From Selaginella moellendorffii (lineage: Eukaryota > Plantae > Lycopodiophyta), in NCBI RefSeq assembly GCF_000143415.4, contig NW_003314307.1:1158952-1222951 (forward strand): 64,000 bases of DNA, in the 5' to 3' direction. The notes beneath the pieces were generated by a model. That model saw only the letters and a program-made list of their open reading frames with translations. It searched no databases and was not told the origin of the DNA. Numbering within the stretch: the stretch's first letter is position 1; each line of letters starts with the position of its first letter. Shown piece after piece: positions 14,316 to 64,000 of this stretch. A program made the translations under genes and the position numbers.

Positions 14316-14996
14316 CTATCGGTGCCTCCTCGAGGGATCGTCTTCCTCGCCTCCGCCTCTCAAATCCTTCCCATTCTCACCCTGATCCACACTGCCACCA
14401 CCGCCACTGGAACCATCAGCATTGCCAGGGATCTCTGCCTCTCGATCCAGCACGGCGTCGAGAATTCCAGCCAAAATTTCGCCAGTAAAACCCTCCGGAT
14501 CCTCCAAATCCCCCGGCAATGGACTCGGTCTCGCAAAGAAATGCGGCTCCTCGTCGCCGGGCATCAACACCAAGAAAGCCCCATCGTAGTTCTCGCTACC
14601 CTCGTCCTCTCCGGCGGCGGCATCCATAGCCGCAAGAGCTGCGGCCGATTCCACGTCCAATCCCACCCTGGCCGGCCTCCGGTACTTGTAATACGAGTAG
14701 AAGAGCAGCAGCAACGCGATCGCGATGAGGAAGAGCATGACGCACAGGCCGGCGATGACGATCACCATCGTTGGAGCTGGCTCCTGGCATCCCACCGATC
14801 CGTCGGGGCACAGATTCTGCGATGGCGGCAGGGTTCCTCGATCGAGCTTGGCACCTGCGCGAAATATTTCGTGAGGAAAGATTGAAAAGCACGCCATCAC
14901 GGACCGAAATTTGGAGCAGCAGCGCCTCCCCCGCCCATCTCCTCCCGGTTCTTGCTCGTCCAAGCGCTCGCGATCAAGAAGATCACATCTCTCCAT
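14316..14996 (-). CDS. GLUTAMINE DUMPER (GDU)-like single-pass membrane protein
   Basis: The TM helix IAGLCVMLFLIAIALLLLFYSYYK resembles the GDU consensus FGGLAAMLGLIAFALLILACSYW. FLVLMPGDEEPHFFARP resembles the VIMAG domain. ATG at 14996; a short 5' intron is possible. Confidence 0.7.
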   Translation of the reverse strand: MERCDLLDRERLDEQEPGGDGRGRRCCSKFRSVMACFSIFPHEIFRAGAKLDRGTLPPSQNLCPDGSVGCQEPAPTMVIVIAGLCVMLFLIAIALLLLFYSYYKYRRPARVGLDVESAAALAAMDAAAGEDEGSENYDGAFLVLMPGDEEPHFFARPSPLPGDLEDPEGFTGEILAGILDAVLDREAEIPGNADGSSGGGGSVDQGENGKDLRGGGEEDDPSRRHR

Positions 14997-15293
14997 CCTG
15001 CTGTGGCAGCCGCGGCTCCCCTGCAGCTCAAAGTCTTGGATCCGCGCAAGATGATCGAAAACCCTCACTACTTCTCGAGCTCGCGGAGGCGATCATCGCT
15101 ATCCCCGGCGACGCCTTAGGCGGCAAGAAAGAACTTATGAAGGATCGCGTCTTTTGAGCTGACCTAGGCTAGCTACATTCTTTTGAGCAGGCCAGGTCGG
15201 TGGTTCGATACTCCTTCCTTTCTCTTCCTGGTTATTAGGGCGAGCAATGGCGCCCCTGAGCTAGAGGTGAGCAGCGGTGCCGACGAGCGATCG

Positions 15294-17937
15294 ATGGAGG
15301 CGCTGTCCAGCTTCAAGCCGATCTGCAATCGAGCGCAGGGCCAGATCGATCCCTTGCTTGCCGCGCATTGCAACAGCACCGCATTCTTGTTCTCCATCAA
15401 TCCTTCCCGCTACGAGGATTTGCACGTCGTGGTGTCCGACTTCCATTCCAACACCTGGCGCGCGAGCTTCGACTACGACTACCTCGAAAATCTGGTGAGC
15501 ATTGTGTCTGTGCTCAACGATTTCTGGCTATAGCTTGAGTGGTTCTACTGCAGAGAAATGAGCTGGGAATACGCGATAGCTTCCCTGTCTATATGCAAAA
15601 TCTACACGATGGCTTTTCATCCAACCAAGTGAAGTTTGAGCTCAGCGCGGCAGCACCTAGTCGTGAGTTTCTTCTTTATGCTTGCTTAGTTTTTCTGGTG
15701 TTCTTCTCGAACACTTCCCTCACTTTTCAAATGCTCCCATCCCAGGTGCTGCTGCATCGGGACGACTGAAAACCAGGATCTCCTTGAGAGAAATCTCGCT
15801 GGAGCTGGAGCTTTCAGAAGGGAGATGTGCCAGCGACAACATGAGCACACTGATTTGGGAGTTTTTCGAGATCCTTTCAGCAGGTTGGTTCTTAGAGACG
15901 GCGTGTTGCTTCTTGTTTGTCATGCCTTAGTTCATCGCTGATGTAGCCTTTTTGATTTGAAGCTTCTTCTCGCAGCCAAGAGCCGAGTGTTCCATTTGGA
16001 AGCTGCTCTAGCGGAAGGGAAGGTACACGGAGCAAGCTCGCTCTTATAACTGCTAATGTTTTTCATCTCACAGATCAAAACTTTGAAAGTTTTGGATACT
16101 GTGGAGTGCATTAGAGCGAAACAGAGGGCCATGGCTATAAACGTCAGCCCTTTGAACCCGTCGCGGAAGCAGCCCAAACCTGTTTTGCAAGCGGCACCCT
16201 CGACTGTCAAGGTATTTAGTATTCGTCTTCCTTCTCCAAACAGCTTGTTCTTCTAGTTTCCCAGTAATTCATCCGACGGGAGCTTTTTCCTTGGAGAAGC
16301 TCCTTGCAGCCCGGACTTGAAGCTTGAAGAAACGTATTGTGCCGGTACGTATTCCAGCTCTGGCACTATGCTTCTGCTTACGTTGAAAATGCAGGCGGTG
16401 ATGAGATGAGCGCTTCTACTGCGAATGGTATTCATGACCAACTATTTGAGGCAATGCCAAATAATCAAGGTCTACTTCCGTCCCTGGATATGCAGCCGCA
16501 TATTAATGCTGACGCTGATCGAGAAGAGAAGAATCGAAGCCTATGTAGTGATTTGTGGGCGAAGTATGCGAAGATTTTCTTGCAGCTTGGTTTACATGCT
16601 AATGTTTTTCTTTCTACTGTCATTTTCCAGGCGGCATTTCTTAGAATGGAGGAAAGAGCAGGGACTGCCATCTTCTAATCTCGAGGATCTACCTCTGCCA
16701 GAACTTGCTGATTGTCTTACAAAGTTCTTTCGCATGGTAAAGAAGCGGAACGGAAGCCTTTTTCCTTCGGAAAGGTACAGGTTTATCTTTCCTGTTTTTT
16801 TCTGATTACCCACGCAAACTCGTTTTTCTGTTTCTAGTTTGCGTGCCATGTTCCGGGCATTTTGCCGCATTCTCAGATCTCACTACAGAAAACTACAACT
16901 ACAGGGACAATATGATGGTCCTGGGGTCGACTTGAGCAGAGACTCACTCTTTGAAAGAGCGAGGCTTGCATGTCTCGAAGCTATGAAGTATAGCAAATCA
17001 CACGGAGGAAATGTGAAACGAAGGAAGAAGCCTGACGAATGGATTCCTGCTCCGGAGGAGGACATTCTTTGCCATCCTGCAAACCAAGTGACGGACCCGT
17101 ATGGTTTGCTGAAGAGGCTTTGCTTCTACGTCATACGCAAGTTTCATGTCCATGGACATATGGAACTCTACTATACGACGGACGTAGAGTTCAAACGATT
17201 TGGGAACGGGGACGGCACTGCGACCTGGGAGTAAGTTCTCGCTCGTCTTATTCTTTCATCTTTCTGGTTATAATGGCTTGAAAATGTTTGCTTTCAGATA
17301 CGATGAGAAAAGAGCTGCAAATCACAAGCGAAAATCCTCGTTTAGAGAGCCTGTGTCGTGCTCCGAGAGTGACGTCGTGCTATGTCTGGACAAGTACTTC
17401 TTCCACGCGCCTCCAAAAGCTTCCGCGAGCGAACCAAGGCAACTCTTTCTAGCTCCGATCGGAAAGCCCGAATCGAACGTAAGTCGTGCATATATCTTTT
17501 CCTCCTTGCTGATACCTTTCTTCTCTTCACAGGTCTGGTACCGGAACCAAATCATGAATCTCAAAACTTTGCGTGGATGGTATAGATACATGGGCCCAAT
17601 GCCAGGTCGAGCCGATTCCGATCCACACCTGAGGTAAACTTTGCGTTTTATACCAGTTTTCGTCTCCATTCCTGACTCGATCATCAGTAGCAGCATGTCA
17701 CAAATGGACGTACTTTACCACGACAGTGATCCGGATCACAACTTGGACGCTGCCGTGAGCTCGGCTGCGTACCTCACGACTCCCAGAGAGTTCCAAGACT
17801 CCGGGAGCTTCGAAAGAAATGGCGGCGGCGGCGTCGTTCCAATGGGGCTGGGATTGGGCTGTGGCGGGGACGAAGAACACTACGATGGTTTCGACGCAAG
17901 CATCAACGACGATCTCTCGGACAACGAGCGCTACTAG
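15294..17937 (+). CDS. Predicted ~652-aa protein: plant PAXX/XRCC4-superfamily-like head and coiled coil fused to a Crypton-derived DUF3504-like (degenerate tyrosine recombinase) domain
   Basis: Twelve phase-consistent GT-AG exons: 15294-15494, 15554-15662, 15746-15883, 15976-16022, 16074-16211, 16257-16344, 16395-16563, 16631-16774, 16838-17230, 17298-17478, 17533-17633, 17688-17937 (1959 nt, no internal stop). The N-terminus (SFKPI...FLFSI...LHVVVSDFHSNTW...LENLRNELGI) resembles the At5g64010-type family. The C-terminal half (WAKRHFLEW...ELADCLTKFFRMVKKRNGSLFPSESL...DPYGLLKRLCFY...VWYRNQIMNLKTL) resembles ZMYM/KCTD1/QRICH1 DUF3504. Confidence 0.7.
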
Positions 17938-17992: not shown

Positions 17993-18782
<790 letters not shown>

Positions 18783-51924: not shown

Positions 51925-53360
51925 TTAAGAAGCCTTTTGTGGTTGAGACAAATGTAAATGACATTGCAATTAAAACTATATTGCTTCAAGTTGGACATCC
52001 TCTCGCATAGAAGAGTCACAAGTCTGATGCCACACAATGGAATTGGGTTATTTGAGATAAGGAGTTGTATGTCATGATTGTTATTGTGAAGGAATGGTGA
52101 CATTATTTATATAGATTAGACTTCCATATGTATTCAAACCATTATTCTTTCCAGTATTTCAATTGTCAAAAGGATCTTTGAGGCTGCTTTGCTTGTTGGT
52201 AAAAGTTCTTGCAAAAAAAGTTTTTTAAAATTTGATATAAACATGAACGTGACAATAAAGTGGCTGATACATTATCCAAAATGGTGAATTTTATCTCATT
52301 TATAAAAGTATCCAATGATCTCTTGGATGAGCTTAAAGAGTTTCTTGACTTTGACTCCTTTATTATTAATATTTGTGCAAAGGTTTTATTAAGGAACACT
52401 TTTACAAATTTGAAGGGTTATAAGTTTGTGTCATTCAAGATACAAGATGGAATCCTAGTAAAAAAGGGATGTATCATAGTTCCTTATGTTGACAAACTCA
52501 TTAAATAGATCTTAGTTGAGTGTTTGATGTGCCAAGTAATGGGCATTTGGGGGTATTGAAGATGTATATGTTGGTGAAGAGGCACTTCTTTTTTTTAACC
52601 TGGGATGAAGTTAGATGTTGAGAAGTATATATATGGTTTTAACCTGCCAAGCAATCAAAATTGATCATCAAAAGTTTGTTGGCCTCTATTATCTTCTATA
52701 TGTACTTGAGAATAAGTGGGATAATATCTCGATGGACTTTATTACTAATTTACCTAAGAGATTAGAAGGAAATTATGCTATTTGGGTTGTTGTGGATCAT
52801 TTGACAAAGATAACTCACTTCTTCTCAATAAAGATGATAATAAAAGTTTTAGAACTTGTTTGAGTATTTATAAACTAATTATTCAATCTCTAAGGTTTAG
52901 AGGTGGTATTGTGAGTGATCATAATCCCACATCCATGTTTTGGTAAATAGTCTTTGAGAAGCTAGAGAATAAATGGAGCATGAGTAGTGGTGAGCATCCA
53001 CAATTAGATGGGCAAATAGAGTGCATAAATTAGCTGTTAAAAGATAGAGGTCTTTTATGGGAAACTTCACTTGACAAGGAGTATGGGAAAAGTACTTACC
53101 TTTACTCCAATTTGCTCATAATCATGCTTATTAATAATTATTGATATGTTTCTATTCATAGCAATGTATGGGTCTCTTGTGAGTGTGAGTTTGGCTTTAG
53201 TTCAAATGCCTTATATTTATGATTTCTTAAAGGATATATAAGATAAACTTAAGTTGGCAAAGTTGAATATGAGAGAAGCTAAAAAATGAGACAAGAGATT
53301 GGTTGATGATGATGATCATCATCAAAAGTATAAAGTTAGTGACAATTTTTTCCTTAAGCT
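51925..53360 (+). mobile_element. Highly decayed Gypsy pol fragment (RNase H to integrase)
   Basis: PFVVETN, NKVADTLS, KWDNISMDFITNLP, WVVVDHLTK and HPQLDGQIE appear in shifting frames. Confidence 0.85.
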
Positions 53361-56300
53361 ATCAAATGCATAATAGTCTCTGAAAGAATGTGGCAATGCT
53401 AATGTAAAGAACCAAAAAGAACAACTCCTATAAGAGTTCAAATATAAAGGGATATGAGTGTATTGATGAAGTAATGGTGAAGAGGAAGGGGATCACTCTA
53501 AAAATGGTGGGGTTGACCATTCCAAAATGTGTGTGAATGAAAACAATTTAGGTGTTAACAAAGAAGACATAACTAGAACAAAGAAACACGATGAAAAGCT
53601 ATTATATTACATTGAAAAATAAACTTAAATCCACCAATGAGGATTTGGTGAAATTTAAGCAGTGATATTCATAGCCTAAACCTATGTGTGTAACATCCAA
53701 AAAGCTAGCTATCAATAAAAGATGTTCTTATGCATGAAGCATAAGTAAGATGGTTAAATTTTGACTTAATTTAATATTTAATGATTATACAAGATGAATA
53801 TGCTTTTTATGAAAACAATAATTATTATTTTAATGTTAATAATTTCTAGAATTTATTGTTGCATATTCCAAATAAATATATATAAAAATAGAATATCCAA
53901 ATCATAGAGGTGTATTTGATAATGTTAGATAATAAATGTATATTTGATGATGTGTCTACCCAGCTGGCAAAAAAACTTTAAAAAAGAAATCCTCTAACTC
54001 ACTTAGTGAGTATAAACAAATGTGGCAATATTGCCTTTATAGTACCCTTAGTACTCTTGTAGAGCAATAATTTTATAGCTGTGCAATCTTTATATACTTT
54101 ACTTATAAATTATGTTAGAAGGTTAATGGATTGGAACTAGTTCTAACTTGTTCTGACACTATTACCCAACTTTAATCTTGCAAGCTCTCTAGGATTATAA
54201 GATTGTAGCTATTACATTTATTTTTCCTTTTTAATCTCTATTACATTTTCTTCTTTGCCATGCATGCTATTATAGATCAAGAAGTATATCATTTGAAGCT
54301 ACTGATGCTATTTGGTTGGATCAAGTTTTTGGTGTTATGAAGTATGATTATATTGGTGTTTCACCCATCTTTAGTGTGTTGTCATTGCTAACTTCTATAG
54401 AACATGATTACATAGTGTCTTTTATTTATGGTGTACTACTATATAATCATGGAGTGTGATTATGACATTGATTAAAGAGTTATAAATGATGTAGTCTGAT
54501 TCTTGGAGGGTATTTGAGGATCAAGTTTATGAAAAGATGATGTATATAAGCTTGAGTAAATTTTAGATTGTGATGAGGAGTTTAATTATTATAGAGATAA
54601 ATTTGGAGATGAGTTCAAGATTTCAAGGGGTAGATATTAATCTTTTAATTTTCCATTTGGTCCTTTTTTTTTCCCTTTTGGTCTTTGCTAACATCTTTTT
54701 ATTACTTGGTCTAAGCCACCTTTTTATATTTTTAATGTTTCTTCTTCATTTGAAATATTTCCCTTTCTTGGTATATCAATCAGTTGTGACTTTTATAATT
54801 TTTATTCTCAATTCGGTGTTAAGTTGAGTGTTTTTTGTCCTCCTCATATTAATCTAAATTTTGAGCATGTATGTGAAGCATAGAATCTTACTTTTGCTTT
54901 GTTAGTGAAGTTTTGATCAATTCTAGTGTAAAGTATTCCTCTATTCTAGAGGTTAAATCACTTTTGCAAGAGTGTTGGATTAAATGTATTTCCTCAATTA
55001 TGAGTGTTGTAGAGAATTTTTATTTTATCTTTGTTACTAAGGATTTCTTTTTTTCACTTGAAAGTGTGGAGTTTTTCTTTAATTTTCCCATCTCAAATGT
55101 AAATTGTATGTTGAGGACGTTGGCTCTTGCATATCTTATTTACTTCTTTCTATTACCCTATTTTTCACTTAAATAACTATTAAAAATTCCTTTTTTGATA
55201 CTTCTTTATCCATTTTTCCTTCCTCCACAAAGTTTCTTCCTTAATTTTTCTTGCTTTCTCATCTTTGCTCTAATGCTTTAAACTTTTGGAGTAGAGGGAA
55301 TAAATAGGAGCTTAGCCATGATGATGGAGTGAGGATGAACAAATATAATAGTGAAGTAAAAACAAACAATATAAATTGTGAAATAAGAATGAGCATAGTG
55401 AATATAAATAGAGCATCCAAAGGCCAAACAGATACGATAGTGGTGAGGCCAAACATAGATGGTGGAGTGAAAACAAGTGCAATAAATATGAATAAAATCA
55501 ATACTTTAGAACAAATTTTCCTTTAAGGAAGGGATAAAAAGGATATAAAAAATGAATAGAGTAAGTCTAATCATCTATGTGTGATGCTAAATGAGAATGA
55601 AGTTTGTGAGTTTGAGTTAATACAAGTTTCAAAAGTTGACCAAAGGGAAGACAGAAACATAAATTTTATTGATAGTCATGAGTCTGAGTTAACAATGGTC
55701 TCAAAGAATGGCCAGTTGTTAGACTTAAAGATGGGATTGCTACAATATTGCTTTGTTTCTCAAAGTCTCTTGGTTCAAAGGTATAGCTATGAGGTTAGTT
55801 CAATTATTTTGAAGTTACAACTGGTTTATTGAGATTTTATACTCAATTAATACTTGTACCAAAACTTTAGGTTTTTTTTTGCCATAGATTATGTTAGTGG
55901 TTCCATAGGATCTCATATTCTTATAGTAATCTATAATCACCTAACAGAAAAGAAGCTTTAAATGTTTTATATCTGACTTATAGTCCCATATATTCTTGTA
56001 TATAAGTAGGGGTATAAACCATAATTATTGTATACTTATTCCCATTTAACAAGAACTTACAATCATAACTATAATATTAAAAAAGGATATTCTTTAAAAT
56101 TTAAAATTTAAAAATAATTTATAGCATTGTTCAACAGTATTTGGTTTTTTTTGGAAAATCTTAGAAAACTAAATATTAAAATATTTTAAATATTATTATT
56201 TAAGATTTATGTTGTACAAATAATAATTCCATACAGGTAAATATGTGATAATTGATATTTTATTTTATGGTTAAAAATATTATAAACAGAATAAGAATGT

Positions 56301-57436
56301 TAAGAAAGAAACATTTAATAATTTTATTTAGACTAAAGTTGTTTCTTGTGAATAAATATATAATAGATTAAATTTAACTTAAGTTTAAATATAATAATAA
56401 AAGCTCTCTAAGGCAAAAACTTTAATTTTCATTAATTAATAGTCCTACTAATTCCTATAATATAATTTCCTTTTTATAATGAATTTTTTATCAATTAATC
56501 CAAAATTATCTTTGTGAGTTCTCAACTCTACAATATATCCTAATTATGATGCTTATGTGGAGAATCTTTGCTGAATATTATCTTGCTCAACATATTCTAT
56601 GCTACTTGCTGGTGGTAAGAAATACTGTAATGTTCACCTGATTCTTTGCCAAAGTCTAAATGTAAGTTGTGATTTTATTATTATATCTCTTGATCCATTC
56701 TCATTGTCTATAAAGACTCCTCGGTTTGGAGAGGTCCAATATAGTCCAATAGAACTATATTGAAGAGTGTAATTGCAGAAGGATGATATGCAAAACTGTT
56801 TCAATGTGTCAGAGGCCTTTAGAGATCTATCTAAGATGTAGTGAGGACGAATTTTGTAAACCACATTCACACCTTAATCCTCCCCAGAAATTTACTTATT
56901 TAAAAACAAATCTTGATTACTAATGAATTAAATCAAAGTTTAAGAGTACTATTAGATGAAAGAAAATCCTAGAATATTCCTGGATAGGCAGTGGTTTGAA
57001 AAAGAAGACGAAAAACATAACACCTAAAGAAACATCCTACTAGAAGAGCTAGTTATTCTGGCATCAATAAATTTATAGACAAGGATTGTGTAATAGTTGT
57101 AAGAATTTTTTTAAAAATTAAAATAAATTTAGAATAGTATAATAATATAGTAAATTTTTCTATGTTATATATATTATAAAAAATAAAAACAAATAAAATT
57201 ATTTTATCAATATTTAAAAGTATAAAAATTTGTAAAAATTCCCTAAATTTATATTTAATTTGACTATATTTTTATATATCAAGTGAGGCAATAGGAATGG
57301 TCATCACATTATAAAATGAACTAAGACCTTTACATATCTAGCACATCTAGAATCATTTAACCTGAAGGAAAATTTTCATTTATATGTTATTATTGTACTT
57401 ATAATAACAAATAGATAGTTTCAGTATATTACTAAC

Positions 57437-57850
57437 ATGAATTTGTGTTCTTTTTTGTTCTTAACAATTCTTCATCTTGTGATTATTATAACTAATTGTG
57501 CTAACAAAGGTGTACATGTAATCAATTCAGTAGGCTCACCAGTTCAAGTAGATTGTAGATCCAAAGAAGATCATATTGGACCCATTTTACTTCAAGATCA
57601 TCAAAGCATATTTTGGGAGTTCATTGATAACATTATTTGTACAACTATGTTTTGGTGTCATGCTATATGGAATGAAAAATTTGTAGCAGATTGGACTTCA
57701 TATGAATGTTGGTGGTCAAGGCCTACTTACCATTACATGGAAACTGAAATGTATGGTTGGGGTATTGAGGTGTATGACAGTTGTCATCCAGATGCTAATA
57801 ATTGTAAAAGGCAACTCTATAAGAAATACAATTGGCATGCTATTGCTTAA
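57437..57850 (+). CDS. S-protein homologue (SPH / plant self-incompatibility S1 family), small secreted cysteine-containing protein
   Basis: Intronless 137-aa ORF with a hydrophobic signal peptide; VHVINS...VDCRSKEDHIG...FWEFIDNIICTTMFWC matches the SPH consensus. Confidence 0.85.
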   Translation: MNLCSFLFLTILHLVIIITNCANKGVHVINSVGSPVQVDCRSKEDHIGPILLQDHQSIFWEFIDNIICTTMFWCHAIWNEKFVADWTSYECWWSRPTYHYMETEMYGWGIEVYDSCHPDANNCKRQLYKKYNWHAIA

Positions 57851-58737
57851 CTATATGATTGTAAATGAAACACTTCAAGAACCTTTATATTTTTTATTTA
57901 AAAAATATAGTTTGTACTACTGTTGTGAGCAAGAAAAAAGGAACAAGAGAAAATCTGATAGAGGGCAAAAGTGAAAGATAGAATCATTCCTGTTTATACT
58001 AGATTTTGATCTTTAATTTCTCTCTTACTTAAAATCCAAATCTATAAATATATGGTTTGATGCAGATTGATAACTGGAGAACAGTATATAAAGACTAGAT
58101 TCATTTAGAAAAAATTAAATCTTAAAAACTTATTATATTTTAAATCATGAAAAAATAATTGTTTAAATATAAAATATCTAATAATTAAAATAATATTTTA
58201 TTTTATTTTAAAAAATATTATATAGATAAGATTAATATTAAAAATAAATAAGATATATTTAACTTGTATAGTATTATATTTTCTATGCATATAAAAAAAT
58301 TATTCATGTATACTTATGATTTTATAGAATAGAGAAATATGTATATCCAATTAGCCCAAAATCCCTAACCTATATATAGGAGCATGTTGTCTGGATTGAA
58401 ACCAATCTAATAGTTATAAAAATCTCACTATGCTAATAATAGTATATAGTAATATAGCTTTACACCTAAATGACATATCATTCCCTCATCTTAAAAGGAC
58501 AAAAAATTGGTATTAGAAGCATAGGATTTTTTATCCTTTATGCTAAAGTGGTTCATATTTCTACTTTTTCTTTTTAGATACCTCACTTAAGAGTGATTAG
58601 TGGATCTAGTGAGAAGGTCTAAAAGGATTTTGCCTCAAGCCATGGTGATGGGTACAACCCATGAGAAGCCTATAGATATTGACTTTGATATGGTAGTTGA
58701 AGGGGCTAATGCAAATGCAAGATACTCAAGATACTAA

Positions 58738-59537
58738 TGTAAGCAACTAAAGACAACGAGTCGAGAGATAATCCATGGGGTTCAAATATAGAGGGAAAGG
58801 GCTCATGAACAAGAGTGCACCCCTTTTTCCAATCGATTAAGGGTCTTGGGATATTTAGGGTTAAGTGTCCTTGGGTTTAAATAGTACTGGGTTGGGAAAT
58901 CCAAACTCAGGAACTTACATTTGGTATTAGAGAGGTCTCGGGTCCGACTTTGTTGGTTAGCTAGGGGAATCACACCACATATTGATTGACATCTAATTGG
59001 TCCAATTTGCTCCTGCTGGGCTTGACTCAAGGGGTAGGGTGTCAAGAGAGTGGGGCTCTCGAGAGAGCTGTGGCTCTTAGCTTCCGTTTACGAGGGCATG
59101 AACTTGCAGGGAAGCATGGTGGATTGTAAGTAATTGTAAGTAAGAGATGGGTTTGTGATATAGGTGGTCTTGGATTACTAATGAGACGAAGGTGAATAGA
59201 CATGGCCTTAGTGTAATAAGCTGATATATTAGTGGTACTTTTGGAGTGTCAGTCATAGGATCAAACATATGGAATACGTGGACCAAGGGCAAAGGCTAAG
59301 TGGCATAGATGCTACTTATGGGGTTAGCATGTCCTCAAGTTGGTGTAAGCAACCAAAGAGAACGATTTGAGAGACAATCCATGGGATTCAAATATAGAGG
59401 GAAAGGGCCCATGAACAAAAGTGCACCCTATTTTCCAATCGGTTAAGGGTCTTGGGATATTTAGGGTTAAGCGTCCTTGGGTTTAAATAATACTGGACTG
59501 GGTGACTTTCTGGGAAGTCCAAACTCAGGAGCTTACA
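58738..59537 (+). mobile_element. TRIM-like non-autonomous LTR element, 800 bp
   Basis: LTRs 58738-58919 and 59344-59537 (TGTAA...TTACA); PBS-like TGGTATTAGAG at 58922; 5-bp TSD ACTAA at 58733-58737 and 59538-59542; non-coding interior. Confidence 0.9.
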
Positions 59538-60944
59538 ACTAATAAGGAGACTGGCCAAAAGGATGATTTAGAAGTGCAAGAGAATAATTTTAGACCAATG
59601 CTAGAGAATTTAGTGACATTTGATGGGCTTTAGCTTTCTTGAAGGAATAGCGATAAAAGAATTTTAGAATAATATAGAGTCTTCTTATGTATATACTTTG
59701 AGTGATTATTAATTTTTTGGAAAGATGAATTTTAGTGTTTAGCGAGGGATTTTCTAACAAATTAATTTGAAGTTGAGGCTTTGTTTTAGCCAATAACATT
59801 TCATTGTTAATTTTTTTAATGACACTTCAAAATATTGAGGCACAAAAGAAGCTTTTTGCATGTCTTGATGACTAGAAGATAATCTTTTTTGTGGAAGGTT
59901 AAGTTATAGCTGATTATGAGTGGATGCGAGATATATTTAGAGGTGCTTGCATTTGCCAAACAAGTGGAGTATTTTTTCTGAGGTGACAATAAAGATTGGG
60001 AGAAGCATAATAAAGAGAAATATTATGATACCTCATAAGGTTTTAAGGAAGTTACTTCAGTCTAAGAAAAGGAAGAGGTTCAAGAAGAAAAATTCTTCTA
60101 AGATACCTTTAAGTATGGTATTTATTTCCTTTGTGGCAATCTATAACACTTATTCAAGATTTTATAGAGTGTAAATAGAAGGAAAAAGCCTCTTAGATTG
60201 TGATCCAAACACTATCCTAGTGTTCAAGCTTTTTCAGATAGTGACATAAAAAAATCTCAACATGAAGTGGGAAGTAGTGATCCTTGAGATGACAAGGACT
60301 AAATTTACGAAGAAGAACAACCTCAAAAATTATGGAGCACATGTTGTTCTTATGTGCTCCTTCATAACTACTCAGGTATGTATATATAACCTCATCAACC
60401 ACTCAATAATTATGGTAGAGAAGATGGTGGATTTATTTAATATAGAAGACTAGCTTCCAATAGTTTATAAAGAGTGCCAATGGTAGTGTGTGCAAATCCA
60501 TTGATCATATACAATGCTGGGCAAATATATTTATCTATAAGATCGATAGCCTTGGTAAAATAATGGTTTCAAATTTTGTAATGCGGCTTGATATTAATAA
60601 GTATCATCACAGAAATTAACAATAAAAAAGTCATTAGCTAGACCAAAGGTTTTAGCACTAAAATTTGCTAGAACAGTTGTCTACCGCTAGGATATTAATA
60701 ATGATTGTTTCAAATTTAATGAGAAAAATATAAAGCCATTTTACAATGATGATAGAAATTGTTATAAGGTTAAAGATAAATCCTAAATTCCTTGAATTTT
60801 ATATGTACTACATAGCATAAAATAAAAGGGTTGTCTTGGACTTCTTTAATGGCTCAAGACATGCCCTTCTCAAAATTTTCAACAACTATTATATATTATT
60901 GAGTAAAATTTTTTCTACTTATACTCACATTATTGCCCATGCTT

Positions 60945-61075
60945 GGCAAAATAGTGACAAATAAACAAAGATAAAAATGTAGAGAAGAGAAGAAGAATGA
61001 GAAGAGAATAAAAAAGAACTTAGCCTCAAACCTCAAAGGGGTGAGTAAGGATAAATATATGTTACTTTCTCAACT
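60945..61075 (+). repeat. Dispersed A-rich repeat segment, second copy at ~63688-63840
   Basis: GCAAAATAGTGA...AAGAAGAATGAGAA...AGGATAAATATATGT...CTCAACT occurs in both. Confidence 0.7.
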
Positions 61076-61161
61076 GTAAGTGATTAAATTTTCCATTCTA
61101 CTTTAATCACTTAACTACACTTTTGACCACTTAGAGGAGTTTCATTCACAACCTCTACAAT

Positions 61162-61557
61162 TGTAAACTCTTGAGTTTGGACTTCTTGGGAGGTCACTTA
61201 GCCCAATACTATTCAAACCCAAGGACGTTTAACCCCAAATATCCCAAGACCCTTAACCGATTGGAAAAGGGGGTGCACTCTTATTCATGGGCCCTTTCCC
61301 TTTATATTTGAACCCCATGGATCGTCTCTCAAATCGTTCTCTTTGGTTGCTTACACCAACTTGAGGACATGCTAACCCCATAAGTAGCATCTATGCCACT
61401 TAGCCTTTGCCCTTGGTCCACGTATTCCATATGTTTGATCCTATGGCCGACACTCCAAAAGTACCACTAACATATCAGCTTATTACACTAAGGCCATGTC
61501 TATTCACCTTCATCTCATTAGTAATCCAAGACCACATATATCACAAACCCATCTCTT
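61162..61557 (-). mobile_element. Inverted partial copy of the TRIM-like family (3' LTR plus adjacent internal region)
   Basis: Reverse complement of ~59141-59537; LTR at 61355-61162. Confidence 0.85.
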
Positions 61558-61869
61558 AAAGACTGGGCTATCTGTCCATGAGTGGTCATCTTATGACCAC
61601 ACCTTAGCACCCTTAAAATGCTTAAAGACATGATAAACACTTTTCCACAATATCCCTTATCTAATCCCTACCAAGTCCCACTCTATCCTTGGTAGTGCTT
61701 GTTAATACTACCATTGAGTCAGAGCCTGTAGACTTAACCATTAAGTCCCATTGATCTCTAGGACTTAATTGCTAGTGTCCTTAATCACTCACAAAAGGAT
61801 TATTCCTCTTCTTTTCCACAATCTGGGATTTTGGGATAATATTTCAAAACACCATAACCTTATATAAGC

Positions 61870-62648
61870 TTTAGGGGTACTCTCCCCACCTTCTGCCTTT
61901 TGGTGCCCTAGCCATATAGCTAAAGTGAAGTTTTAATGAGTTACACTAAGTATCCAAGTAGGTAATGCCACTTATACTTAGATTGAGAGCATTGACCATC
62001 TGATCTCCTGAAGGAGATAGAGCCGGCTCTTGAACATTTCACCAAGCTACCCTACTTGTTTGTCCATATTCACTTTAGTTTTGGACTTCTTAGTGGTTAT
62101 ATCATCACCCAATACATGGGTATAACCTTCTTAAGTCACATTAGCCTTTTTTAGCCAAATTAGTTCCACTGGAGTTTAACCCCTACACTTTATGGGACGA
62201 TTGCTTTATGCTTTCACCCTATAGCCTATATTAGTATTTGGACTTAGTCTTGGACTTGGATTTGGACTTGGACTCAGACTCAAACTCGAACTCAAATGAA
62301 CTTAGTCTCAGTCTCGGTCTTAGTCTTAGTCTTTATCTCGGTTCATCTCGGACTCCATTTGGGACTCCACCTCAAACTCTATCTCGGGTCCATCTCGGGC
62401 TCCATCTTGGACTCCTTCTCAGACTCCATCTTAACACTTCTATGTGTTATGTGTTAGTCCTATTATGTCCCTTTTTTAGAGACTCACTTATTGCTTGCTT
62501 CGTGCTCATTCCTCAAACACTTCCTTAGGAATTCTATTCCGACTCTTGACTTTTCAAGTTTGAGCTTTTAATCCAAATGTGTTACACTTATTTAGCTTTC
62601 GCTTCAACCACTACTATGTGGCCCCCTTTTAGCTCCACTTTGGGATTT
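61870..62648 (-). repeat. Inverted copy 3 of the ~0.9-kb minisatellite-containing repeat
   Basis: Reverse complement of the 36636-37535 unit; GACTCCATCTTG-type array at ~62238-62432. Confidence 0.8.
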
Positions 62649-64000
62649 GAGATCAATTTGCTTGTGGAATGATGTTAGGTAGCTTTTCAAGTATATGATA
62701 GCTAATTTGTGAAAGACTTTATTTCAGATTTAAACAAAAATTACTTTTCAAGACAAATTTCTCTCTAGTGGTAATGGTCAATATAAGTCTCTATTGAAGC
62801 TTGTATAACAAATTTTTGAATTTTAAATGTTTGAGTAAGCTCTTTATGTATAACAAATGAGCATTGATTAATTCATTTAAATGTACTAGGCATAGAGTGG
62901 TTTGTGATAATCGTTTTTAAATTTTTGACTTGTAAGTCTTTTTCAAGTCTTATAGGCTCTTGCAATATGTGTAGGAAACTTAAACTCAGGATAAGTCTAC
63001 TCTCAAACCATGTCTAAGTAGTTGTCTAAACTAAAGAACTTTGGATCAAAGCTTTGAGACAACACAATATTCTATTGTGATTTTGCCTCGTAAGATTTGG
63101 GTGAATAATTCCCCAATTTATTCTTTGTTAAGGTTGGCTCTAACTCTTTTTAAACTGGAGTCAAAGACAAGAATTACAAGGGCCTAATTTTCCTACTTGC
63201 ATATGTCTAGAAAAATTGTGACACACTATTGAAAAATGTGTCCTTTAAAAACCAAGTGAGAACTTGCTTAGAAGAAAAGAATTTTAAAGTAGTTAATTGT
63301 GTTTTCCACATCAAACACACTCAATTCTTTCTTCTTTTGGATTTTTCTCAAGAAATTGCTAGTTAAAATAATTTGAACTTGAGTTTCTTGGCAATATATG
63401 CTAAATTCCAATTTCAAACTCATCCCATGCTTTGGCGCTTAGGTAACGGTTGAAAAATTATTTGTCTGGCATGGTCTAAGTACTAATCCACTACAATCGC
63501 AAAGAAAGCTCCTTTGTTTAGTGTTGTCTAGGCTTAAAGCCTCTACAATTACTAAAGAGATTTACTTGTGATTCCTAGTGCAATTTTCTCTTAGTTGTTT
63601 CTCAAACTAAAGAATGACAACTTATCCTACTATGGTTGCCAAAAGTGAGTAAGGTTTTTTCTGTTTATACTCTGATTCTTGCCTCTGTTTGCAAAATAGT
63701 GATAAAAAAGTAGAGACAAAATATAGAAAAAGATAAAAAAAGATAAAAAAAGATAAGAAGAATGAGAAAAGAATAAAAAAGAACTCAACCTCAAACCCCA
63801 AAAGTGTAAATAAGGATAAATATATGTCACTCTCTCAACTCTATTTTGCACAAATTGTTATAGGTGAAAGAAAAGATAATTCAATACAAATGTATATAAT
63901 AGTGAATGGGGATTGTTTTCTAGTATGTCTAAATGCTACTTATATAGTGCATGATTTTATAATCATTCTTAATTGCTTCTCACTTATTTATGATAAATGT

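Follow-up and report, generated by a model that had tools for sequence, protein, structure and literature searches.

What is encoded by a plant gene whose first half resembles a DNA-repair scaffold and whose second half resembles a transposon-derived recombinase, and is it one gene at all? This question is raised by positions 15294-17937 of a 64,000-nucleotide stretch of Selaginella moellendorffii DNA (assembly GCF_000143415.4, contig NW_003314307.1, positions 1,158,952 to 1,222,951; the whole of this stretch is referred to as the window), where a first-pass annotation made from the letters alone had proposed a fusion of a PAXX/XRCC4-like head to a domesticated Crypton recombinase domain. The explanation that best accounts for our data, and that we consider likely, is a conserved host-gene family in which a PAXX duplicate has been joined via a variable linker to a dead, truncated recombinase module, yielding what would be a dimeric tether.

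Rebuilt from the window sequence, the gene occupies 15294-17937 on the forward strand (to which all coordinates of its parts refer) and comprises 12 exons coding for 652 amino acids, just as the first-pass annotation had it. The coding sequence of 1959 nt, which opens with the ATG at 15294 and closes with the TAG at 17935-17937, is phase-consistent and has zero internal stops, and each of the 11 introns is of the GT-AG type and 45-92 nt long. Exons 1-6 lie at 15294-15494, 15554-15662, 15746-15883, 15976-16022, 16074-16211 and 16257-16344, and exons 7-12 at 16395-16563, 16631-16774, 16838-17230, 17298-17478, 17533-17633 and 17688-17937. The translation is letter for letter that of RefSeq XP_002980847.2 (P0001), an "uncharacterized protein" of LOC9657615 in Selaginella moellendorffii, and an older JGI model of the locus, of 570 amino acids, also includes both halves. 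Intron 5 (45 nt) and exon 4 (47 nt) represent the weakest splice points; the RefSeq model has identical ones and makes no use of an alternative acceptor near 15946 that had been pointed out in the first pass. Searches and structure predictions were run with single exons or with the database protein P0001.

Translation of the gene seems to begin with the ATG at 15294, because the 47 additional N-terminal residues of P0024, the 699-residue RefSeq model of the other haplotype (locus L004), align with no orthologue. These residues are gained through an upstream ATG (L004 1501-1641); within the window, the upstream stretch 15129-15239 is identical to the other haplotype, and the ATGATCGAA start of the P0024 model is present at 15051. 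At the opposite end, exon 12 offers two in-frame AG acceptors 6 nt apart, 17688 and 17694, the former being taken by RefSeq; use of the latter would drop two serines.

The N-terminal portion divides into a PAXX-type head domain, a beta-sandwich with a helix-turn-helix (residues 1-129, exons 1-3, 15294..15822), and a long helix, presumably a coiled-coil dimerisation stalk (residues 130-187, exons 3-5, 15823..16139). A profile of four heads, searched against the sequences of the Protein Data Bank (PDB), recovered chain A of 8P26, the Arabidopsis protein AtPAXX, at an E-value of 6.2e-13 (the entry labels its molecule 'U2 small nuclear ribonucleoprotein auxiliary factor-like protein'). The same profile matches stand-alone plant proteins of 240-273 amino acids with E-values down to 1.9e-31, and PAXX-like proteins of this stand-alone kind include Selaginella LOC9638243 (247 amino acids) and representatives from Diphasiastrum and the angiosperm Syzygium. 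Congruent with the profile, the AlphaFold2 model of residues 1-200, with a mean predicted local distance difference test (pLDDT) score of 87, displays a beta-sandwich head and one helix over residues 130-187. Its best structural match is 8P26, both with Foldseek (template modelling (TM) score 0.88-0.90) and with VIA, a comparison independent of Foldseek (Z 18.3, root-mean-square deviation 1.9 Å, 145 of 147 residues), followed in VIA by XRCC4, SAS-6 and CCDC61 at Z about 11 and by human PAXX at Z 10.4. With the stalk helix of the model aligning with that of XRCC4, the window protein displays the beta-sandwich head, helix-turn-helix and long stalk helix that characterize the XRCC4 superfamily. 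The initial impression that the first ~165 residues form a PAXX-like head plus coiled coil is thereby borne out. A literature search on At5g64010, the AGI (Arabidopsis Genome Initiative) code under which the likeness had been recorded, retrieved no paper, and the code is unconfirmed.

How does the fused head relate to PAXX itself? In the maximum-likelihood head tree, fused heads and stand-alone PAXX split at 100/100 support, the former falling outside the stand-alone PAXX clade, with Selaginella and Diphasiastrum each possessing one fused and one stand-alone type. Moreover, the basic C-terminal motif R-[AS]-K-x-[RK]-G-x2-[LI], of the Ku-binding type, closes each of the eight full-length stand-alone PAXX proteins examined and was found in none of the seven fused ones examined. 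The fused head is therefore, by phylogenetic placement and tail sequence, a PAXX paralogue rather than an orthologue, and one that has lost the Ku-binding-type tail motif. Fused heads and stand-alone PAXX have several motifs in common that most fused members conserve strongly, which suggests that a partner of the head has been retained and that the head is not a mere stalk. According to the plant PAXX preprint of Khan and Ochi (10.1101/2023.05.26.542399), AtPAXX binds Ku via its C-terminal tail, with L228E abolishing Ku binding, while the AtPAXX head binds the head of XRCC4 and the protein stimulates ligation by LIG4-XRCC4, properties established for AtPAXX only.

Turning to the second half, the residues from exon 7 onwards had been likened to the DUF3504 pattern of Crypton-derived animal genes. 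An AlphaFold2 model of residues 280-575 (mean pLDDT 87) shows a four-helix N-terminal domain and then a mixed alpha/beta domain, which we assign to an N-terminal helical domain of core-binding, SAM-like, QRICH1 type (residues 282-410, 16517..17033) and to a DUF3504-like remnant of a recombinase catalytic domain (residues 411-556, 17034..17592). Foldseek places QRICH1 from the Zincore complex (9HJT_H, E 3.6e-7) first among PDB entries, with numerous Cre structures behind it, and VIA likewise ranks QRICH1 (Z 14.5) above Cre (11.5), XerH (8.9) and XerA (8.5), with Ndc10 also among the structural matches (Z 6.0-6.3). Considered by domain, the first matches integrase N-terminal domains and the plant ALOG domain (Z 5.5), and the second, in VIA, type IB topoisomerases at Z about 8 (topoisomerase IB 8.4). 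Six of the eight nearest rows in the ESM Atlas are animal clusters with PF12012 (DUF3504) in 77-100% of their members; PF25561 (QRICH1) occurs as well in three of these six (QRICH1-like, ZMYM2-like), and one of the six is KCTD1-like. A seventh row, with PF25561 in 25% of its members, matches model residues 1-125 (TM 0.69). The DUF3504 likeness thus stands, and structure searches on either half returned the folds expected at the outset: 8P26 and the XRCC4 type for the head, and the QRICH1/Cre recombinase fold for the C-terminal half.

At the sequence level the signal is fainter. The Pfam DUF3504 model (PF12012) matches residues 431-550 at E 0.016, and the isolated module at E 0.0034, with 15.7-17.9 bits lying below the cut-off of 29.7; seven of 16 family members give such a sub-threshold match (best E 1.9e-5), two of them matching Phage_integrase as well. 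Run exon by exon at E up to 10, Pfam returned neither DUF3504 nor an XRCC4-type family, phmmer with exon 9 (130 amino acids) gave merely a chance match among PDB sequences, and a 16-sequence profile of the C-terminal module found nothing meaningful there. UniRef labels a Marchantia relative a DUF3504 protein; the other proteins of the family are listed in databases as uncharacterised.

Can such a module still act on DNA as an enzyme? In an alignment that includes relatives with the catalytic set, the first Arg and the Lys positions are substituted in every fused protein, by His450 (17151-17153) and Ala483 (17317-17319) in the window protein, and in every fused protein the alignable part stops before the region with HxxR, His/Trp and the Tyr nucleophile. 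The R-H-R-Y catalytic tetrad of an active tyrosine recombinase is absent from the window protein. With no catalytic residues and the C-terminal third of the domain gone, the module therefore cannot cut or join DNA; as modelled, it is a dead, C-terminally truncated tyrosine recombinase of the Crypton/DUF3504 type.

Relatives retaining the catalytic set exist in plants, for example in the liverwort Calypogeia fissa. In P0011, P0013, P0018 (Calypogeia fissa) and P0023 the first Arg, the Lys, the His and the Tyr are preserved and KxxR takes the place of HxxR, making these proteins, including the bryophyte ones, candidate active Crypton-like recombinases. Marchantia presents another situation: P0007 (Marchantia polymorpha, MARPO_0141s0031) and P0048 (M. 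paleacea) are stand-alone relatives of the C-terminal module without a PAXX head, and they are nearly identical (tree branches 0 and 0.009), from which liverworts would seem to possess a conserved host gene of recombinase origin of their own.

Between the two halves lies a variable linker (residues 188-281, 16140..16516), in which the sole invariant motif is L-K-L-x3-Y (residues 232-238, exon 6, 16317-16337), with L232, K233, L234 and Y238 invariant across six fused proteins (alignment A3). The protein ends in an acidic tail (residues 557-652, 17593..17934) predicted at low confidence, pLDDT falling below 50 after model residue 283, and the tails of the orthologues do not align with one another. 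At the very C-termini of several fused orthologues (P0002, P0006, P0067), a common short motif [LI]-[DE]-E-I-[TN]-[LM] is found, and this is missing from the window copy and the fern proteins.

Are both halves truly parts of one polypeptide? An exhaustive HMMER search with exon 9 (130 amino acids) across 1.84 billion representatives at E <= 0.001 recovered 23 proteins only, including the 652-residue Selaginella protein, a 700-residue Selaginella paralogue, a 717-residue Diphasiastrum protein and transcript-derived proteins, with more distant matches in Marchantia and Ceratodon. Through profile searches, both halves were then located in a single polypeptide in lycophytes (Selaginella, at two loci that are each present on both haplotypes, and Diphasiastrum), in ferns (Adiantum capillus-veneris and a Pteridium aquilinum transcriptome contig that covers window-protein residues 2-558) and in gymnosperms (Taxus chinensis and Cryptomeria japonica). 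In addition, contigs of 2.5-2.9 kb from many public sequencing runs contain uninterrupted open reading frames of 725-749 amino acids with both halves and short flanks, one such fused-protein cluster being present on dozens of contigs, and intron-free contigs of this kind are what the mRNAs of a gene with 11 introns should look like. No fused member was recovered from angiosperms or bryophytes, in searches with known blind spots that leave this absence provisional; bryophytes have stand-alone relatives of the C-terminal module and angiosperms stand-alone PAXX. The proposed fusion is thus upheld as one conserved reading frame, and the same architecture, which the first pass had proposed to look for in lycophytes, ferns and bryophytes, is present in the first two and in gymnosperms as well, with none found in bryophytes.

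The trees of the head and of the C-terminal module agree in separating fused from stand-alone groups at 100/100, and in both the fused proteins constitute one clade within which lycophytes, ferns and conifers form separate groups. Such a topology agrees with vertical inheritance since an early vascular plant, and with it a fusion that arose in early vascular plants rather than being confined to Selaginella. Of the two Selaginella paralogues, the window copy evolves faster, with a head branch of 0.88 versus 0.19 for the other copy, and is devoid of a glycine-rich loop common to the other fused heads and PAXX. When compared with the second haplotype, its exons differ by 1.2% and its introns by 2.2%, with no exon indels; the ratio of nonsynonymous to synonymous substitution rates (dN/dS) amounts to 0.16, and both haplotypes have the same genes on either side. 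Judged by these sequence comparisons, the window copy is not decaying, and is a host gene under purifying selection. A tblastn search within the window found no second copy.

These data bear on two trivial accounts of the locus. Adjacent PAXX-like and DUF3504-like genes could have been joined by gene prediction, an idea to which the 45-nt intron 5, the 47-nt exon 4 and an in-frame ATG at about 16406 lend some substance; however, the uninterrupted reading frames of 725-749 residues on 2.5-2.9 kb contigs of many runs, the named Pteridium contig covering residues 2-558, the identical clade structure obtained from either half and the invariant linker motif all speak for one gene, and we reject such an artefact as very improbable. 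Scarcely conceivable, and likewise rejected, is that the locus is a copy of a Crypton-like transposon, active or decaying, rather than a host gene: while relatives with an intact catalytic set do exist, bryophyte ones included, every fused member has lost the catalytic residues and part of the domain, the window holds a single copy in a gene neighbourhood shared by both haplotypes, and a gene of 11 introns with a dN/dS of 0.16 and a tree following the plant groups does not behave as a mobile element.

What, then, may the protein do? It would dimerise through the PAXX stalk, and the dimer would thereby present two dead-recombinase clamps able to hold DNA or a DNA-bound partner, representing a bivalent tether. 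If the conserved head keeps the head-to-head contact with XRCC4, as the AtPAXX head does, the recombinase remnant could stand in for Ku as the scaffold's route to DNA. We tentatively favour, at rather less than an even chance, this version, an end-joining accessory acting via XRCC4 contact in which the remnant replaces Ku-mediated recruitment. Its fullest form is somewhat unlikely: an end-joining accessory of roughly the age of vascular plants, with no angiosperm member recovered, where a dead Crypton recombinase took the place of the Ku-binding tail of a PAXX duplicate and afforded Ku-independent recruitment of an XRCC4-binding scaffold to DNA. The main alternative, possible if doubtful, is a chromatin or transcription co-regulator akin to the animal DUF3504 proteins, with the module clamping DNA-bound factors or specific sites and the PAXX part providing dimerisation without any role in repair. 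The closest solved structure is after all QRICH1 in the Zincore complex, which according to a preprint (10.1101/2024.10.23.619601) locks zinc-finger transcription factors onto DNA, regulators make up the majority of Crypton-derived genes (PMC3212892), the fused proteins are without a Ku-binding-type motif, and XRCC4-type heads serve non-repair assemblies too (SAS-6, CCDC61). Against such a role speak the strong conservation, in most fused members, of the head motifs of stand-alone PAXX, and the lack of any DNA-binding or transcription-factor domain alongside the module.

Several aspects weigh against the tether interpretation and the parts from which it is built. The Pfam DUF3504 score of the window protein stays under the gathering score, and the assignment of the C-terminal module rests on predicted structure and transitive sequence links, because the sequence profiles reach no solved structure. 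That a single transcript spans the locus in Selaginella is likely from the RefSeq model and the orthologous mRNAs. Being on a fast branch and having lost the glycine-rich loop, the window copy may thus have moved away from what the ancestral protein did. Finally, the contacts of the fused protein with DNA and XRCC4 are putative, proposed from homology and models, and so is a reach to DNA independent of Ku.

The surroundings of the gene can be described briefly. Tail-to-tail with it, at 17993-18764 on the reverse strand, is a two-exon glutathione S-transferase gene, which we take, going by its sequence alone, for a member of the tau class and whose equivalent on the other haplotype has GST_N Pfam matches. 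Upstream, at 14316-15068 on the reverse strand (L004 772-1394), there is a small gene, the other-haplotype product of which is 190 amino acids long with a weak GDU_TM Pfam match only. In the final 12 kb of the window (52001-64000), G+C drops from about 50% to 26-35%.

To our knowledge, plants are known to have a single XRCC4-like accessory factor, PAXX, which came to light as late as 2023. The family described here would place beside PAXX a further protein of its type, a paralogue that brings its own, likely DNA-binding module and is a concrete candidate for repair biologists working in ferns, lycophytes and conifers, and its predicted structure points to an old, conserved recombinase domestication in vascular plants. 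Should the end-joining interpretation hold, it would give land plants their first domesticated Crypton with an assigned function. That no fused member was found in angiosperms, the best-studied plants, may explain why the family was overlooked, and raises the question of replacement there. Consistent with the background given in the first pass, domestication of DUF3504 in animals and Crypton-derived genes in fungi have been described (Kojima and Jurka 2011, PMC3212892), and a 2026 paper on Glomhopper calls DUF3504 widespread in Opisthokonta; neither mentions land plants. The accessible part of the plant PAXX preprint (10.1101/2023.05.26.542399) contains no mention of Selaginella and no description of such a fusion. 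We found no published description elsewhere, and the PAXX-recombinase fusion is a new domain architecture, in a lineage without described Crypton domestication.

How does this architecture compare with known systems? Plant PAXX (AtPAXX, 8P26) resembles the fused protein in the fold of head and stalk, with clear sequence homology and several motifs in common, whereas the fused protein belongs to a separate paralogous clade (100/100), is without the basic C-terminal motif that in AtPAXX lies in the Ku-binding region (around L228), and has about 370 extra residues, including the recombinase-derived module. The plant ALOG (DUF640) proteins (PDB 8P5Q) have a DNA-binding domain of the recombinase N-terminal type and match the core-binding part weakly (Z 5.5), but keep that helical domain only, while the fused protein also keeps part of the catalytic domain and has its closest fold in the Crypton/DUF3504 type. 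Iyer and Aravind reportedly derived ALOG from a recombinase in 2012. A fusion of head and stalk to a nucleic-acid-related C-terminal domain likewise occurs in trypanosomatid XRCC4-like proteins, as mentioned by Khan and Ochi (10.1101/2023.05.26.542399); there the domain is a phosphodiesterase enzyme instead of a dead recombinase, and in this other lineage no homology between the fusions is implied. In the Crypton-derived fungal proteins Ndc10/Cbf2 and Gcr1, inactive recombinase folds have been reused for DNA binding, as we propose for the C-terminal module, although the similarity is distant and both Crypton group and partner domains differ. The animal Crypton-derived DUF3504 genes (QRICH1, ZMYM2-4, a KCTD1 isoform and KIAA1958; PMC3212892) have the same two-domain recombinase fold, with QRICH1 as the best match: like the fused gene, these are conserved host genes in which the catalytic residues have been lost and the recombinase part is fused to an unrelated N-terminal part. 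The fused protein differs from them in occurring in land plants, in scoring below the Pfam threshold, in retaining just the first two thirds of the catalytic domain, and in having as its partner a member of the XRCC4 superfamily rather than a zinc-finger, BTB or CARD domain.

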